Shown piece after piece: positions 512 through 48,665 of a stretch of DNA of 64,000 nucleotides. Where the stretch lies: positions 1,798,001 to 1,862,000 of the forward strand of contig JAMWBK010000005.1 of NCBI GenBank assembly GCA_029953675.1, given 5' to 3'. The stretch comes from Rhodosorus marinus CCMP1338. Its lineage: Eukaryota > Plantae > Rhodophyta. Position numbers and translations under genes: made by a program. The first letter of the stretch is position 1. The number at the start of each line of letters is the position of its first letter. The notes under the pieces are model-generated. The model was given only the letters and a program-made list of their open reading frames with translations. It did not search any database and was not told where the DNA came from.

Positions 512-2169
512 ATGAGAGTCCTTAATTTAGTCAAGCCCTTCATGGGCATTCTCCCGGAAATTGAGCAACCTGGGAAGACGGTTCCGTTTAAGGAGAAGGT
601 GCTTTGGACGTCGATTACGCTCTTCATCTACCTCGTTTGCTGCCAAATTCCTTTGTATGGAGTGGTTAACACGAAATCGTCGGACCCGTTCTACTTTATG
701 AGAGTGGTGCTGGCTGCGTCTAATCGAGGAACGCTGATGGAGCTTGGAATTTCTCCGATTGTTACGTCGTCGTTGATTATGCAACTTCTGGCTGGAGTGA
801 AGATCATTGAGGTCGATCAAAGCGTCCAGGAGGATCGTGTTCTCTTCTCCGGAGCGCAGAAGCTTTTCGGTTTGGTCATTTGCCTTGTTGAGGCCATTGT
901 TTATACTCTGTCGGGTATGTACGGTGAAGCGTCCGCACTAGGTGTTGGAAACATCATCCTCATCATCACCCAGCTGTTCGTAGCTGGGGTGGTGGTCCTA
1001 TTGCTTGATGAACTGCTGCAAAAGGGTTACGGAATGGGATCTGCTATCTCCCTTTTCATCGCTACAAATATTTGCGAAACCGTCATGTGGCAAGCATTGT
1101 CTCCGACAACGATTAACATTGGCCGTGGAGTTGAGTTCGAAGGAGCCTTGATCGCCATGTTTCATCTTTTGCTTACGAGGAAGGACAAGCCGCAAGCCTT
1201 GCAAAGCGCACTTTTCCGAACTGAGCTTCCGAACGTGAGCAACTTGGTGTCTACCGTGGTTGTTTTTGCAATCGTAATTTACTTCCAGGGCTTCAGAATA
1301 GACCTTCCGGTTAAGAGTCAGAACGTGCGTGGATACCAGGGATCTTATCCGATCAAACTATTCTACACCTCGAATACGCCGATCATCCTTCAGTCGGCAC
1401 TGGTGTCAAATCTGTACTTTTTGAGCCAGCTTCTGTACTCGAGATACCCGGAAAACTTCATTGTCAACCTCCTCGGTGTATGGCACACTATTAGCGAGGA
1501 GTCGACACAGATGTATCCAGTGGGAGGCCTTGCGTACTATATTTCGCGTCCAGCAACAATTCAAGGTGCCATAGCGGTGAGTTCAAACGGCAGAAACCAG
1601 CGCTACGTTATTCGATCATTTTCGTCATGGATATTGTCCAATTGATATTGTCCAACTGAAGCAATTGTTTCATCGACTCTGCCATTCGTAGGATCCAATT
1701 CGTGCGGTTTCTTATCTGGTTTTCATGCTTGGTGCTTGTGGGTTGTTCTCCAAGCTGTGGATCGAAGTGTCGGGTTCGTCCGCTAGGGATGTGGCAAGAC
1801 AGCTGAGGGATCAGAATATGACGATCAAGGGTCACAGAGAACAATCCGTTGTGAAGGAGCTGAACAGGTAAGACATATGCCAATAAGTCAGGAACGCTCG
1901 AAAATGGCGATCGCGACTGGCGGCGGGTACACTACGCATTTTTCGAAGCTGACGAGCAAACTTTTTTTTTGTTGGAATCGACCAGGTACATTCCGACTGC
2001 GGCTGCTTTCGGTGGCATATGTATTGGCATTCTGACTATTATGGCCGATACTTTGAACGCGATCGGATCCGGTACTGGTATTCTTCTTGCCGTTACAATC
2101 ATCTACGAATACTTTGAAATATTTGCAAAGGAACGTCAGAACGACCCGTCTCTGTCGTTGTTCAAGTGA
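512..2169 (+). CDS. SEC61A: Protein transport protein Sec61 subunit alpha, 3 exons: join(512..1576,1692..1867,1986..2169)
   Basis: Motifs [73 protein letters not shown]. Spliced continuation [11 protein letters not shown]...[16 protein letters not shown] and [10 protein letters not shown]...[18 protein letters not shown]. Both introns are GT-AG. Confidence 0.97.
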
Positions 2170-8004: not shown

Positions 8005-9788
8005 TCACTGCTTCTTTCCGTCGTCTCCAGTAGGTGGCTGAACATCGGGTGAGGGCTCCGGCTCCTCAGCGTTGCTTCTCGCTTCATTGATTCTCCCAAT
8101 GTTGCTCCGACAATCGTTCATCTCGGACTTCAGGAACGACTGTTCGCTGCTTAAAAAGTTCACAAAATGTTTCGCGGTTCTCCCGCAGTATCCTCCTTTG
8201 GCCTTTGCAAATTGAGATGCACGGAGTTCAAGGATATCTAGAGTTACGAAAAGGCAACATCAAAGAGAAAGCCCTAGGTAAGTCTTTTTTCCACACATAT
8301 AGGGTCACCACGACCGACACTGAAACAATCGTTGGTTCATTGAGGACGCTCACCGGCTCCGATTTCTCCAATCCCTGCTCTACTGGCAAGATATTTCACA
8401 GTATCCAGGTATTTCTCTTTCGTTGCTTCTTCAAAAATCAGCATTGTGCCAAACCGGTCACTGAACCCAAACACATCCTCCTCCAAATACAGTTCTTCAC
8501 CTTCCGCGTCTCCGGCAATAATGTTCTTCTGGAGCTCCGCATAACGGCAGCTTGTTACACAGATGATAACGTTCTGGGGTATCTTGACGCAGCTCCCGTC
8601 GAGCACTTTCCTAAGGCATCTGTATTCTTCCTCGTCAACGTCATAGTTAAAATCGTCCACAAATAATACGAACTTTTGTGCTCTACCAGCAAGCTCCGCG
8701 AAAATCGAGCGAAACGTTTCCATATCAATGGCGGACTCAATCTCAACAAGTCGCAGTCCGCGGTCTGCGTAAGTATTCACGCAAGCCTTAACAAGCGAGG
8801 ACTTTCCGCTTCCCCTGGTCCCAGCTAACAGCACATGGTGTGCCGCAAGCCCTTGAAGGAGGAACTCAAAGTTTTGCCGTAAAACATTCTTCTGTCGACG
8901 GATGCCAAAAATATCATCCAGGGTCACCTCATCGGGAGTCTCAACAGGTATGAACTCAGCTTCCTGCACACCTAGCAGGAAGAACTTGTGGTCCGCGAAA
9001 AAACCAGACCCACGCTGCGTATAGTTCGAGTGCAGCTCTGGCACCAGGTCCGCCCAGGATGACAGAGTATCCTCGAACTGGAGCCGAAGAGTTCGCTGAT
9101 TGCCATCAACGGTCATCAAGAATTCGGAGCGCTCGCGGTCCTGCACGTGCCATGCGGGGACCGGAGCACCTAGATAGAACGAAACCAACTCAGCAATACG
9201 CTTCGGGTCGAAGCCAAACAGCTTCTGCAAGATGTTGAGGTCATGCATGGCGGCGGAAAGCAACGCTTCAGGCATATCCACAAGGTTCTTCTTCTGACAA
9301 GTTAATGAGAAGACATTATCCGAATAGAGAAGCAGAGACAGAAATCGGTCTGTCCAGCTCAGTCCAGGTTCGGCAAGAGAGGAGAAGTAGTCCCCGTAAG
9401 ACTCTGATACTGGACCTCGCAGGGATTCGTCCTCCTCTTTGTCAAGCTGGTAAACAGCCTCCAGCAAATTCAATAAGTTCTGGACCGCTTCATCCTCCAA
9501 AACATCATCAAAGAACATCAGCCTGGAACATTCCTCTAGGACGTCAGTGACATGGGCAGATGACAGCATGTCCCGCTCCAGCTTGTCCTCCTCCGTTTCA
9601 GCCGCGGACGCAGACTTTGACCCTCTACCAGAGGCGCTTTTTCGTGTCGACGACGACGTTCGAACCCGGGCATTTGGCTTGGAGCGTGCTGTTGAGCGAC
9701 TTCCACTCACGCTCATTGTCGTCAATGAGCACGCCCTATTTCGCTTGGGCTTCGTGAGAAGATCTACTAATCCTACAAACGCCTCCAT
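8005..9788 (-). CDS. DUF815-family AAA+ ATPase with plastid-type presequence, join(9788..8354,8237..8005)
   Basis: Walker A HVLLAGTRGSGKSSLVKA, GLRLVEI, Walker B FVLFVDD, LRKVLDGS..PQNVII, FSDRFG. A second exon read by eye (DILELRASQFAKAKGGYCGRTAKHF) matches the DUF815 C-terminus. The N-terminus MEAFVGL is Ser/Arg-rich. Confidence 0.85.
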
Positions 9789-12251
9789 GTTTCCCCTTCG
9801 CAACCAAACTACGCAAACAGAATTCTACCCGACTCCCCAGTTCGCGTCCCCACGACCGCCGTCCCTAAACTGGCCAAGCAAGCTATGTACTATACTCGCT
9901 CAATTGACATCGCTCAGAGGACAACGCAACTCCTTCAGAGGAGGGGACAAACAAAAGTCCTCCCTCTACAACGCTTTAGTCTCAGCGCGTCCCCTTCCAA
10001 ACTCTCAGAGCTTTCCGCAACTCGTATCTTATCAGACCCGAACTGATCCCAATCTCCACTACCGCCAACGCCCAAACCCGCAAACCCCGTCTCAGTTAGA
10101 CTTCTCCAAAAGCGAACGAAATTGCGGAAGCGCGAAGCGGCATCCAATGCCCCATTTCAATTCCTAACGAGAAACGAACCTCGTCTACGAACAACATGAA
10201 AAAGTGTCACACAGACACACGAACCGAACCCATATTGATTGTCCGTCTTCCAGACCAAGCTCTCAGCCCAAACAAAAACCAGGACATCTAATTCTTCTTC
10301 CTTTTTTGACGAACTAGACCCCCCCCCCCTATTTCTAAAAAGTTTTCAATAAATCACAAAAGTACACGAAAATCCGAAAACAACTAACCCTCCCCGACCC
10401 CCCCCCCCTAAGAAAAAAACACTTTTTGCAAAGCGTAGAGCGGGAGCTACAATCTTTGTCAAACGCTCTCCTCCCCCTTCTGTGTTTTTGTTTCGGTCTT
10501 GGACTATTCAAACAAAGTCTAGCGAAGGGCCGGAAATTCTGAGTTCCATGACATTCACACCAAAAAAGTTTTAGCCTTTTCCAGTAGACGGAAAATCGTG
10601 AGTATGTGCTCACCGGGTTAGAATCCAGCTGCTCGGGCAAAGCGAGAAAGGCTATTGTAAAACCGGTCCGGGAGGGGGGGTTGGGGTTGGAAAGTAGGAC
10701 TGGCCATTTAAAGTGTGACAACTGTCCTGATCTTATTCGGAATCTTGCTCCAGAGTCCTAGTGCCAGGCTGTCCATAGGTTATGACTCCTAGTATAGTAT
10801 AAGCGATGTATTGTATCGATTTTCTGATCAGCCGTCCATTTTTCTCGTCGGAGTCTAAGTTTTAGGTTTAGTTGATTTCTTGTGGAAATTCCGGCCGTGC
10901 CCGTGCCCCTCTACCAATAGCAAGAAAGGGAATAAAAAATCCCTTGTAACTCAAGCCAATAAGTTCGCGTCCTTGTACGACAACAGGACGCGGAACTATA
11001 TAATTGGATAAATTTTCACCTGACTGAATTGGAAACCACATACAATTGGACAAATATGTCCACCGCCTCTAACTGAAACAGGAGCGGCACGTTTATTTGT
11101 TTTTTTCAGGGGTGTACTTTTCCCGGAATGGCGTTGATATAGAACATAATTTATAGATTAAGAAGCTCAGCCACGTAGAACTTTCCAAAAAACAGTTCAG
11201 CTAACGGGAAAAAACGTTCTTTGAGCCGTGGGGAAATACAACAAAAGCTCTAACTCGTCCAGTCTCTTTCTCTCTGAGGCTGTGATGTGTGACTCATTCG
11301 TTTTGACGAAAACAATTGCAATACTAATGGACGCCCCGAGACGCGCTTTGAGCCGTCTCACTCCAACCCATCTGACCTCAGAGGCACCGCTATTTTTGAG
11401 GGGTTGGCTGTGCCCGCGGTTTTTTTGTTTTTTTTTCCGTGTGCATGTGTGGTGGGTGCGGGTATGGACTTTCATCTTTTTGTAGAAAAACAATCGATTA
11501 TAGCCGAAAGAGATGTAAAAAGTACGGAAATACACACCCTTTATACATAGTTTGCATCAACGAGGCCTGGAAAGTCGTCCATTGGCTAAGCACGATATCG
11601 CTGAGCAATAAGAACGAAAAAAGGGGGGACCGGAGTGGTTTCTACTATTTTAGAATAAAATTATTTTTTTTTATAGGAATGTAGGAGGCGCTAATTTGGA
11701 AAGGGGGTTTGGAGTCTTTAATTGGAAGGTAAGCGGGAAATGTCATCGGCGATCGATCCCCCTAGTTTGCAGGACCTTGACTGATCGATCGATAGTTGGG
11801 TTTTCGTTTTTTTGAAGTTGTGTTTAGGAGCATTCCAGCATTCTACACAATTAGTGGGAATTGAATTAGGGGTTCGCCGGTGAAGTGGATTGGGAATGTG
11901 TGGGTTGTGCAATCAGGCCTCTTCCTACCACACGCGAATAGCAGAGGCTGGCTGGTCATTAGCAGTTTCCTTTTTTGCCGTTGTTTTTCCTTCACGAGGC
12001 CTGATTGCGGAGTGCCCGGGGGGATGGGATTGAGTTGTTTCATTCATTTTTAAGGATTGCCCTCTACTCGGTTGCGGTTTTCTATCCATTTCCGGTGTGT
12101 TCCGTAAACGAAAAATTCGTATTGAGGAGAAGGGATTACAGGGGCAGTTTTACTTGCTGAGCGAGGGCGGACGATCCTGGGTCAAGGTGCAATTGAGCGG
12201 AGGCAGGGTGGGGCTTGGGAGTATTGCTTTTGAGAAAATTTGGAAAGCACT

Positions 12252-46033: not shown

Positions 46034-46694
46034 CCAAGTTCGCGTTCGACAAGCCGTGTAGATCCAAGTTCACGGAAATGCAGGAATCGCTTCTCCTTAT
46101 TGCGATAGAATGAAAGGGCAGGATCCGATGACAACGAATCAAACTGTTAAGACCTACTTCTCTCGGGGCATGTACTAACGCATAATTCACCGAATAACGC
46201 AAAGTTGCGAAGCCTTTTCACATATTTGTTTGTACACTCATCGTACGAGGGTGCAGATAGAGATGACTTTGAGGGATCACCGTCCATGGCCAGATTGATG
46301 GCCACATGCTAACAGTTAACCCCAAAAATTTAACAATGCTAGGCTGCAATGTCTTTGTGCACAGCAAAAATGAGTTCAACAGTGTGCATTGTCTGCACAT
46401 CTTGAATCGCAGAATGATTAGCGCAACTGAAGCGGTTTCATCCGAACTGTCGGACTTCCCCCGAAAGGGATTTGCTTTCAGACTAACGTGTTCTCAGTGG
46501 AAGAAATGACGTGGCGCATTCGGATTGAAAGAGTCATCCAGTCCGTCCAAAGAGCAGTTTGGTCTCGATTTTTAACATTCTCCTTTAAGTTAGTTTATAT
46601 TTCATTAGTTAGAGCGAAAGAATTAGTAAATGTTTTCTAGATTTGCTGTGCAACTATGGTAAAAAGATATGCTAATACGGCTGGTCTTCTGGGG

Positions 46695-48665
46695 TTATGC
46701 GATAACGCCATTGATCACATCCGTACCCGGCCCACCTTCGACGTCATCTACGCCGACACCAGTGTAAATAACATCAGCTCCCTCGCCACCGCGAATGAAG
46801 TCATCTCCAGGTCCAAGATAAAACTTGTCATCCCCAGGACCTCCGTAAGCAAAATTGTCGCCAATAAGATCCACAATGTCATCATCCCCCCCCTGGCCCC
46901 TCAAGACGTCGTTGCCTTCCCCTCCGTTAAGTTTGTCATTACCATATCCTCCATCAATCAAGTCGTCTCCACTATTACCAACCAAGTCATCATTGCCGGG
47001 TCCGCCTTTGACCGTATCATTACCCTCTCCACCAGATACCTTGTCATTCCCAGCCCCACCAGAAAGTCGATCATCCCCGAGCATTCCGCTTATTTCGTCA
47101 TCACCATCTCCCCCGGATATCACATCTGCATCATTACCACCAACCAGTACATCGTGTCCGTCTTGTCCATACACCTTGTTTTCGCCGTCCCCAGCGTCTA
47201 TGTTATCATCGCCAACTCCGCCGTAAGCGTGATCGGATCCGGCACCTCCTCTAATAAAGTCATTTCCACTGCCCCCATATAAAACGTTTGCAGCACCGCC
47301 GTCCTCGCTCTGCAAGTCGTAGATCCGATCATCATCGGGGCCGCCATTGCTATAGTCGTAATCATAACCACCGAAAATCACATCAAGGCCATCTCCTCCA
47401 TAGTGCCTGTTCGAACCCGAAACATCACCGATGAAATCGTCTCCTGGTCCACCGTACGTACGGTCATGCCCACCGCCGCCGATTATAGTATCATCACCAT
47501 CACGACCGAAGAGGACGTCGTTTCCTTCTTCTCCCGCGAGCAGATCGTATCCAAAACCACCATTCAGGTAATCGTTGCCAGCCCCACCGTACAGCTTGTC
47601 CTTCGCCCCAAATCCATAGAGCATGTCGTCACCTGCTCCGCCCCTGATGAAGTCCTTCCCACTTCCTCCCATGATCAGGTCGTCCCCATCGCCGCCATTA
47701 TGCTCGGTCCTACCTCCAATCGCGTATATTCTGTCATTACCATCCCCGCCAAAGGCTGAACTAAAATTCCCACCGACTTTGAGGACGTCGTCACCCTCTC
47801 CACCATCCAGTCTGTTCCTTCCATACATATCGCGGATGATATCACTATGGCCTTCACCATAGAGGTAGTCTCGGGAATTTCCTCCGTCAATGATGTCTCT
47901 ACCATCCCCGCCGCGAATTGTGTCGATGCCACGCGCTCCCAAAAGGGTGTCATCACCATCCTCCCCGTAGATGAGGTCATCCCCTTCGTCTCCGATAATA
48001 AGGTCGTTGTCTCCTCGTCCATAGATCTTGTCGTCGCCAAGAAGTCCGTAGATGACATCCACCTCTTCTGTGCCGATAAGAACGTCATCTTCGTCTGTCC
48101 CAACAATCTTATTTACACAGGTTATAGGCAGTGGGCAACGAATCTCTCCATCGCCGGTTAAACAGTCTTTGTTCGCTGGCTTCACCTCAACAGTCCTGAT
48201 CTGAGTTCTAATCGCTGCACTGATACTCAAGCACAGATTCGCATTGCAACAGTTATCCGCAGCTGTAATCTCGTCATTGCACACAACCACACCAAGCTTT
48301 TTGAGATTTGACGTTGCCACCACCTCGGTACCAGTGAACCTTTCTCTGTTTCGCGAGTCTCCTTCGCACTCTACAATCCCATAGTCGAGCTTCACAATGG
48401 CATTTCCTCGCGGAGCTTTGAGTTTCACATCCAAGCACGTGCCCCGACTGGACACCAGAGTGGTCTTGATGCAAACCGTTGCCTGGGAGTCGCCATCCTT
48501 ATCCTTCAATTTCAAACAATACCTTGGAAAAATTCCGGCTTTATCGCCAGGAAAGAAATCCTTACACGTACGTGTGGGTACCCCCAAAGCCGGTACTAGC
48601 CTCAAAACGCATAGAAAAATTACCAGCGCTCCGACCAGCGGACCGGTTCGACGCTCACCCCCCAT
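46695..48665 (-). CDS. Secreted RTX/hemolysin-type calcium-binding repeat protein, 656 aa, intronless
   Basis: Hydrophobic N-terminus LVGALVIFLCVLRLVPALG, a 12-Cys domain of about 155 aa, then about 470 aa of GGxGxDxLx nonapeptides (for example GGAGNDYLN, GGEGNDVLR, GGPGNDDLV) running to the stop codon. Confidence 0.92.
   Translation of the reverse strand: MGGERRTGPLVGALVIFLCVLRLVPALGVPTRTCKDFFPGDKAGIFPRYCLKLKDKDGDSQATVCIKTTLVSSRGTCLDVKLKAPRGNAIVKLDYGIVECEGDSRNRERFTGTEVVATSNLKKLGVVVCNDEITAADNCCNANLCLSISAAIRTQIRTVEVKPANKDCLTGDGEIRCPLPITCVNKIVGTDEDDVLIGTEEVDVIYGLLGDDKIYGRGDNDLIIGDEGDDLIYGEDGDDTLLGARGIDTIRGGDGRDIIDGGNSRDYLYGEGHSDIIRDMYGRNRLDGGEGDDVLKVGGNFSSAFGGDGNDRIYAIGGRTEHNGGDGDDLIMGGSGKDFIRGGAGDDMLYGFGAKDKLYGGAGNDYLNGGFGYDLLAGEEGNDVLFGRDGDDTIIGGGGHDRTYGGPGDDFIGDVSGSNRHYGGDGLDVIFGGYDYDYSNGGPDDDRIYDLQSEDGGAANVLYGGSGNDFIRGGAGSDHAYGGVGDDNIDAGDGENKVYGQDGHDVLVGGNDADVISGGDGDDEISGMLGDDRLSGGAGNDKVSGGEGNDTVKGGPGNDDLVGNSGDDLIDGGYGNDKLNGGEGNDVLRGQGGDDDIVDLIGDNFAYGGPGDDKFYLGPGDDFIRGGEGADVIYTGVGVDDVEGGPGTDVINGVIA

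Follow-up and report, generated by a model that had tools for sequence, protein, structure and literature searches.

Bacterial RTX proteins remain unfolded in the low-Ca2+ cytosol and are threaded C-terminus first through the type I duct. Substrates of the type I secretion system (T1SS) carry an uncleaved C-terminal signal of ~60 residues, and the low-affinity Ca2+ sites of RTX repeats have a Kd of ~0.5–0.8 mM (PMC3034196). The beta-rolls formed by these repeats fold from the C- to the N-terminus and need a C-terminal capping group, a part that any bulky C-terminal mass can play (PMC5618222). S-layer RTX proteins such as Caulobacter RsaA (PMC3034196) and Synechocystis Sll1951, like the RTX adhesins, have no catalytic domain and form or anchor Ca2+-dependent surface layers. 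The Bordetella adenylate cyclase toxin (5cvw, 6sus, 7usl, 9p0c) is an acylated pore-forming toxin with five linker-separated RTX blocks and a C-terminal cap, and in Azotobacter AlgE the RTX R-modules (2ml1, 2ml3, 2agm) are joined to a carbohydrate-acting extracellular partner, the epimerase A-module. Here we describe an RTX gene of Rhodosorus marinus CCMP1338, a unicellular marine red alga, found in a window of 64,000 nucleotides (positions 1,798,001 to 1,862,000 of contig JAMWBK010000005.1, assembly GCA_029953675.1). It encodes a signal-peptide-like N-terminus, a Cys-rich domain and 51 RTX units that run to the stop codon. It is a genuine nuclear gene of R. marinus, and its sequence makes a secretory-pathway beta-roll protein of the alga the likely reading of its product.

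Results

The RTX gene occupies window positions 46695..48665 on the minus strand, where gene call and ORF scan agree on a complete coding sequence: an uninterrupted 1971-nt open reading frame (ORF) with an ATG start, 656 codons and TAA. The 656-aa protein is identical to that of a single-exon gene already called on the 3,187,197-bp contig and on record as a hypothetical protein; the exact sequence is missing from a 15-billion-protein cluster table, although the gene is on the NCBI record. Read from the sequence, an in-frame TAG two codons 5' of the ATG (48669..48671, minus strand) fixes the start unless an unseen 5' intron exists, and the three frames past the stop are stop-rich, with nothing RTX-like or tail-like in them. 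The first-pass annotation, made from the letters alone, had described a signal-peptide-like N-terminus cleaved at ALG|VP, a Cys-rich domain, and roughly 50 nearly uninterrupted nonapeptides ending at the stop without a C-terminal tail, in an intronless gene among spliced neighbours and with no toxin or enzyme domain. Each of these features was borne out. The gene span of 1971 nt is fully accounted for by 656 codons and a stop, leaving no introns, whereas the neighbouring WD40 gene stretches over 1269 nt to encode 336 aa and that for dyskerin over 1983 nt to encode 470 aa; both are spliced, since their spans exceed the coding need. For the genome as a whole, the genome paper gives 24,821 introns in 8,392 genes, or ~3 per gene (PMC10250338).

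The match to PF00353 (HemolysinCabind), the check that had been proposed for the array, had an E-value of 5.6e-78 and a score of 256.7 bits, where the cut-off is 23, over 13 stretches, identifying true RTX repeats that are predicted to form a beta-roll. By score and predicted fold the algal protein is a PF00353 member. Its 51 units fall into two blocks, both on the minus strand: block A (residues 189–449; 47319..48101), with 29 units in unbroken nine-residue phase, and block B (residues 455–652; 46710..47303), with 22 units, again in unbroken phase. Between them, a five-residue register slip (residues 450–454; 47304..47318) is the sole break in phase and a possible hinge. Only the four residues GVIA (653–656) and the TAA follow the last unit (46695..46709), with no C-terminal cap and no T1SS signal. 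The consensus over the 51 units is G42 G32 x G40 x D44/N5 x [I23 L16] Y16; a minority of units are degenerate, yet their length is exactly kept. With 106 Asp+Glu and 29 Lys+Arg, the net charge of the array comes to -77; two N-x-S/T sequons occur in the protein as a whole. At the DNA level, Tandem Repeats Finder reported no array, its single 27-bp match spanning 1.9 copies; because there is no tandem repetition in the DNA, the repeats are old, and neither a recent expansion nor an assembly artefact.

No other domain was found in Pfam or NCBIfam, and no enzyme, toxin or anchor segment. The NCBIfam RTX_toxin model (NF033943) reached 217 bits against a cut-off of 1000, its best stretch covering profile positions 688–798 of 930 and thus repeats only; the serralysin model (NF035945) reached 91.7 bits against 500, again through the repeats only, and Pfam Peptidase_M10 did not match. 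Since both models match the repeats only and lie far below their cut-offs, the algal protein is neither an RTX toxin nor a serralysin.

The N-terminus (residues 1–28, MGGERRTGPLVGALVIFLCVLRLVPALG; 48582..48665, minus strand) was judged by rules for n-h-c layout rather than by SignalP. It consists of an n-region MGGERRTGP, an h-region LVGALVIFLCVL and a c-region RLVPALG: two Arg are followed by a hydrophobic run (mean Kyte-Doolittle value of 3.14 over residues 11–20) and then by A-L-G|V-P, where small residues (A, G) at -3 and -1 suggest probable cleavage at ALG|VP. Averaged over 19 residues, hydropathy peaks at 2.45 here and at 0.88 in the mature part. As this is the sole hydrophobic segment, the protein has no membrane anchor and no GPI-type (glycosylphosphatidylinositol) tail.

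Between signal peptide and array lies a 12-Cys domain, predicted to be all-beta (residues 29–188; 48102..48581, minus strand), which ends in the junction to repeat 1. The protein has 13 cysteines, one in the signal peptide and 12 within residues 34–183, and no Pfam family matched residues 29–188. To find relatives of this N-domain, an exhaustive HMMER search of 1.84 billion representative proteins was made with residues 29–186. There were four matches, three of them real and all from R. marinus: the paralogue P0121 and the proteins P0123 and P0124 (phmmer E-values 4.5e-18, 3.4e-06 and 3.3e-05, respectively). The fourth, P0122 (746 aa), was rejected as spurious, being a repeat protein of low complexity whose match is split into 8 short stretches. 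A word-indexed search with residues 1–195 and a profile of five Cys domains both returned no relatives, so that the family was recovered solely by the exhaustive HMMER search. Among the 1.84 billion representative proteins, the family is known only from Rhodosorus.

Family members exist with and without an RTX array. P0123 (195 aa) and P0124/P0125 (246 aa) are MMETSP transcripts that encode a signal peptide and the Cys domain and no repeats, showing that the Cys domain is transcribed in Rhodosorus, each time with its own signal peptide. The n-h-c layout recurs in all four other members without sequence conservation. The cysteine framework (C6 C22 C37 C49 C72 C101 C111 C112 C117 C149 C155 in the numbering of the ~160-residue domain) is invariant across the family at 22–36% pairwise identity, and the invariant columns of two alignments (A1, A2) include 10 Cys positions. 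On its sequence, the RTX protein belongs to this Cys-rich secreted domain family of Rhodosorus, unnamed and defined here, and its N-domain is probably held by six disulfides.

Two side observations concern P0123. It is encoded at positions 107–694 of a 1275-nt transcript contig (L003; JGI 3300017118, Ga0186320_109010, MMETSP R. marinus), where a convergent partial ORF for a C2 domain at 1011–1274 indicates convergent genes lying close together. The CCMP1338 annotation has no entry with exactly the P0123 sequence, so CCMP1338 and the MMETSP strains may be substantially different.

The remaining relative, KAJ8903302.1 (NDN08_004411; P0121), is a 692-aa paralogue encoded by an intronless gene on a different chromosome-scale contig, the 2.2-Mb JAMWBK010000007.1. 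Like the RTX protein, it has a signal peptide, the Cys domain, a junction motif and repeats that extend to within 12 residues of the stop; unlike it, it carries the module twice in tandem (signal peptide, Cys domain, RTX, Cys domain, RTX), with shorter arrays. The Cys domains of the two proteins are only 26% identical, with the cysteine framework retained, and the junction C[VI]N.I.GT..DD.[LI].GT is conserved in all three repeat-linked copies. Because framework and junction are conserved, the Cys domain plus RTX array constitutes a single module that existed before it was duplicated and that selection has maintained.

Close to the paralogue, 2.8 kb away on JAMWBK010000007.1, we observed another intronless gene (L002 12885–16172, minus strand) whose 1095-aa product has a bacterial-type domain set (GSDH, bMG1, NPCBM and two Big_5), with an RVT_1 reverse-transcriptase fragment upstream (L002 1027–2028, minus strand). 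Its product may be another secreted protein gained by horizontal transfer, and the paralogue may lie in a transfer-prone neighbourhood.

Structure prediction was performed with AlphaFold2 (AF2). In the full-length model (25 aligned sequences; mean predicted local distance difference test (pLDDT) 78.2, predicted template-modelling score (pTM) 0.70), residues ~181–652 are predicted at pLDDT 93–98 to make up a single regular beta-roll in which a short strand recurs every nine residues, and the sole dip (71), at residues 451–460, coincides with the register slip. The N-domain was poorly modelled there because the alignment lacked its relatives. A second model of residues 29–300 from four family sequences (mean pLDDT 76.8, pTM 0.63) gave an all-beta N-domain with block pLDDT of ~51–86 beyond the N-terminal tail, followed by the roll at 82–92. 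Foldseek matched the roll to adenylate cyclase toxin blocks IV–V, Pseudomonas lipase and the AlgE R-modules, in agreement with a sequence search of the PDB (best solved match 7usl_C, E 3.2e-35). For the N-domain, Foldseek searches of PDB and BFVD returned weak similarities to beta-sandwiches of a generic kind (GH2 accessory domain, KirBac, PDE-delta); the most suggestive, to CBM56 5t7a (E 0.047, probability 0.96), is a hint of carbohydrate binding that is not established. In a beta-roll, two nonapeptides make up one turn with a rise of ~4.8 A, so we estimate that 51 units form ~25 turns and a rod of ~12 nm.

How the algal protein compares with bacterial RTX proteins was assessed from a full-length search, which returned thousands of them, led by 'calcium-binding' or 'M10 C-terminal domain' proteins of Paracoccus and other Rhodobacterales and matched only through the repeats. 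All source-named matches among the best 120 listed were bacterial, many of the 120 bearing no source name; swamped by bacterial arrays, such a search says nothing about orthology. The Rhodobacterales proteins (for example P0001, P0005 and P0007) resemble the algal one in having 50–60 GGxGxDxUx units, 42–43% identical over 444–498 columns. They differ in lacking a signal peptide and in having a tail of ~56–60 residues, a length of ~1,000–1,100 aa and other N-terminal regions. Several differences hold more widely. First, 4 residues follow the last unit in the RTX protein and 12 in the paralogue, compared to a median of 56 in the 120 best bacterial matches. Second, the two algal proteins have 13 and 26 cysteines, compared to a bacterial median of 0. 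Third, both have a hydrophobic N-terminus, compared to 3 of the 120. Lastly, the bacterial consensus tail GGAGxDxFVF...DxIxDFxxGxDxIDL after the repeats has no counterpart in the algal protein.

Measured against the RTX exoproteins of Linhartova et al. (2010), the algal protein has no C-terminal signal of ~60 residues, has an N-terminal signal peptide (rule-based) where those proteins have none, and is encoded among eukaryotic genes and a retroelement instead of being linked to genes for an ATP-binding cassette (ABC) transporter and a membrane fusion protein (MFP). Because it departs from them on these three counts, it is not an RTX exoprotein in their sense (PMC3034196). Its predicted roll matches the Ca2+-dependent parallel beta-roll of the Bordetella toxin, which is useful as a structural and folding reference only: in the algal protein the two blocks are each continuous in phase, a C-cap is absent, and neither a hydrophobic or acylation segment nor an enzymatic one is present. 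AlgE (E 1.7e-08 to 1.9e-05 for the R-modules) is similar in joining RTX to an extracellular partner and differs in its epimerase and T1SS export, the algal partner domain having no detectable enzyme fold. The closest functional analogy may be to the S-layer and adhesin proteins, which are nevertheless exported by T1SS with C-terminal signals, and whose homology to the algal protein was seen in the repeats only. The algal protein probably binds Ca2+ as a bacterial beta-roll does, but would do so in an inverted topology and after export by another route.

The composition of the RTX gene is that of its surroundings. Its GC content is 0.516 and its GC content at third codon positions (GC3) 0.488, compared to GC3 of 0.456–0.678 in seven confirmed neighbouring exons. 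Gly codons (GGT/GGC/GGA/GGG) are used at.28/.23/.31/.18, versus.28/.20/.35/.17 in the pooled neighbours, and relative synonymous codon usage (RSCU) correlates with the neighbour pool at 0.47, inside the neighbours' own leave-one-out range of 0.16–0.58. The genome paper describes the nuclear assembly as long-read and pseudo-chromosomal, with 31.2 Mb and 13 contigs >1 Mb (PMC10250338).

The called neighbours of the RTX gene are threonyl-tRNA synthetase (ThrRS), the WD40 gene, dyskerin/Cbf5 and a CAF1B/HIR1-like WD40 protein; other exons in the window encode Sec61alpha, a DUF815 ATPase, an NAD-binding oxidoreductase, a HEAT-repeat protein and a desaturase. The long Sec61alpha exon (512–1645, plus strand; SecY E 9.4e-47 and a Plug_translocon domain) encodes the translocon subunit that the RTX protein would use, but their sharing a window is coincidental and is no evidence of linkage. 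At 8337–9803 (minus strand), an unbroken ORF that encodes 488 aa and a DUF815/AAA ATPase domain (E 1.7e-51) is unusually long for a window that is otherwise intron-rich.

No gene is called in the 9 kb that separate the RTX gene from ThrRS. Most of this stretch is explained by a degraded copia-like long terminal repeat (LTR) retroelement with broken frames (52966–56086), upstream of the RTX gene. It comprises an rve fragment (55140–55658, minus strand; Pfam E 4.8e-08), an RVT_2 fragment (54415–54828, minus strand; E 0.0011, below the Pfam cut-off) and flanking direct repeats of ~195 nt (52966–53160 and 55891–56086; 79–83% identical). Two further, overlapping families of direct repeats at 51162–51469 (75–79 nt, 92–95% identical, spacing 146–160 nt) indicate local tandem duplication of ~150 nt in the gene-free upstream region, and overlap an unannotated 167-aa ORF with no Pfam match (51204–51707, minus strand).

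Several candidate features at the RTX gene itself were rejected. The plus-strand ORFs 46656–47282, 46855–47226, 47403–47759 and 47847–48161, and the ORF 47675–48106 on the same strand as the gene and out of its frame, encode 104–208 aa rich in Ser, Pro and Ile and are by-products of repeat composition, not genes; the antisense ORFs and a GC skew of -0.24 over 46–48 kb both result from the periodicity of Gly and Asp codons. TATATA at 48691–48696, 26–31 nt 5' of the ATG, was rejected as a promoter element for being too near the ATG.

Discussion

We lean, by a small margin of confidence, towards a reading of the RTX protein as a chimeric, Sec61-imported extracellular protein in which the N-domain serves as a cap and the array as an acidic Ca2+ rod in coat or mucilage. 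The data show the architecture, the nuclear location, the host-like composition, the loss of the bacterial tail and the conservation of the module, while targeting, folding and function are inferred. The chain would enter the endoplasmic reticulum co-translationally via Sec61, N-terminus first. The Cys domain would then fold and oxidise first, acting as a cap or nucleus in place of the bacterial C-terminal flank, and the repeats would bind Ca2+ and fold from N to C while emerging into a lumen that contains Ca2+, the reverse of the C-to-N polarity of T1SS substrates. We propose the N-domain for this part because nothing that could act as a cap follows the array, and because this disulfide-rich domain directly adjoins repeat 1 via a conserved junction; the N-cap mechanism as stated is tentative. 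Outside the cell, in seawater with ~10 mM Ca2+, the product would be a rigid, Ca2+-loaded rod of the estimated ~12 nm, with the possible hinge at 450–454 and its charge of -77 before Ca2+ binding. R. marinus has a mucilage coat instead of a rigid wall, and the beta-sandwich head might bind a component of cell coat or mucilage. Since the protein lacks enzyme, anchor and toxin segments alike, the most likely of the functions considered would be a structural or adhesive one in coat or mucilage, a proposal that draws on analogy with the bacterial S-layer and adhesin proteins and that we hold with less than even confidence. The boldest version, a polarity-inverted beta-roll with a disulfide-locked N-cap and N-to-C folding whose rods form an S-layer-like or cross-linking coat, we regard as unlikely.

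Several points weigh against this reading. First, the signal peptide was called by rules alone. Second, the N-domain model derives from 4 sequences (pLDDT ~51–86) and its fold matches are generic, and packing of this domain onto the first turn of the predicted beta-roll is conjectural. Third, no transcript of an RTX-bearing family member was found in MMETSP or JGI, by exhaustive protein search and two JGI scans; the scan with the N-terminal part of the RTX protein gave no relative, and that with the N-part of the paralogue gave only an RTX-only metagenome contig (L004). Fourth, the protein has no retention signal, yet may reside in an intracellular secretory compartment. Lastly, a horizontal origin of the repeats is not demonstrated, because the gene is fully ameliorated, no bacterial flank survives, the array resembles that of the paralogue no more closely than it does bacterial arrays, and no donor can be named from repeat similarity.

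On the origin of the repeats, the most likely and most parsimonious account, since RTX arrays of such quality are otherwise bacterial, would be that a bacterial RTX module arrived by an old horizontal transfer, lost its tail and was fused to a host secretory domain, after which the combined module was duplicated. The first-pass annotation had proposed a horizontally acquired module. The gene is chimeric, and at most the repeat module would have been transferred; the transfer itself is not demonstrated, the N-terminal half is endemic to Rhodosorus and the composition is host-like. The array is 39.6% identical to that of the paralogue over 212 aa and 42–43% identical to bacterial arrays over 444–498 aa, and because it is no closer to the former, repeat similarity carries little phylogenetic signal. 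The same pattern would be expected if similarity were driven by the motif and the repeats were native, having grown from a short Gly/Asp seed converging on RTX or descending from an older eukaryotic stock. Fully host-like composition, an endemic partner domain and the lack of any surviving bacterial flanking domain or tail remnant all fit such an origin. We nonetheless consider it rather improbable, given the strength of the PF00353 match (256.7 bits), the 42–43% identity to Rhodobacterales arrays over 444–498 columns, the exclusively bacterial source-named matches among the best 120 listed and the absence of any DNA-level sign of recent internal expansion.

The role of the protein may also differ from the one proposed. 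With ~51 potential Ca2+-binding turns, an array charge of -77 and no enzymatic or anchor domain, it might act as a low-affinity, high-capacity Ca2+ buffer or store, calsequestrin-like, in the secretory system or vacuole, or as a secreted decoy or antagonist against bacteria; the Kd of RTX low-affinity sites lies within the luminal Ca2+ range (PMC3034196). However, the C-terminus GVIA is not a retention signal of the HDEL/KDEL type, the conserved disulfide-rich beta-sandwich head suggests binding of an extracellular ligand, and a rigid, phase-perfect rod exceeds the needs of a buffer, which leaves these roles only a small chance of being correct.

Still less probable is that the gene is a decaying or silent relic, no longer expressed and without present function. 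The missing MMETSP/JGI transcripts of the gene and its RTX-bearing paralogue would be consistent with this, as would the adjoining 9 kb of gene-free, retroelement-bearing DNA, but repeat-rich transcripts assemble poorly from short reads, which makes the absence from MMETSP weak evidence. Against decay stand the intact 1971-nt ORF with its clean start context and upstream stop, the perfect nine-residue phase across 29 and 22 units even where motifs degenerate, and the sharing of all 12 Cys and the junction motif with the paralogue at 26% identity.

Bacterial contamination or a misassembled bacterial segment, which the first-pass annotation had asked to exclude and which the overwhelmingly bacterial distribution of RTX repeats, the best full-length matches to Paracoccus and other Rhodobacterales (typical algal associates) and the intronless gene might suggest, is untenable and effectively refuted by the continuity of a 3.19-Mb long-read contig that places the gene between spliced eukaryotic genes and a copia-like retroelement, by GC3 and codon usage indistinguishable from those of its neighbours, by an N-terminal half related only to R. 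marinus sequences, MMETSP transcripts included, and by a paralogue on a separate 2.2-Mb contig.

Searches of an open-access library turned up no paper on an RTX protein from an alga or any other eukaryote. Domain databases list scattered eukaryotic PF00353 matches, and the protein may not be unique among eukaryotes. The passages of the genome paper that were searched contain no discussion of the RTX gene (PMC10250338). To call the locus an undescribed system, as had been done at first, overstates the case: we describe one structural protein, which has a single paralogue and had been deposited before as hypothetical, and not a multi-component system.

The significance of the secretory-pathway beta-roll protein lies in an RTX array that is working, or at least kept by selection, in a eukaryote, with a topology opposite to that of a fold tied to one export route. 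If the proposed reading is true, the protein would offer a natural test of whether the capped end sets the folding polarity of the beta-roll. Ca2+-switchable beta-rolls already serve as protein-engineering scaffolds (PMC5618222), and an N-capped form would widen that toolbox. It would also illustrate clearly how a repeat module from bacteria can be combined with a secretory domain confined to one lineage, and would provide an entry to the almost unknown cell-coat proteins of unicellular red algae.

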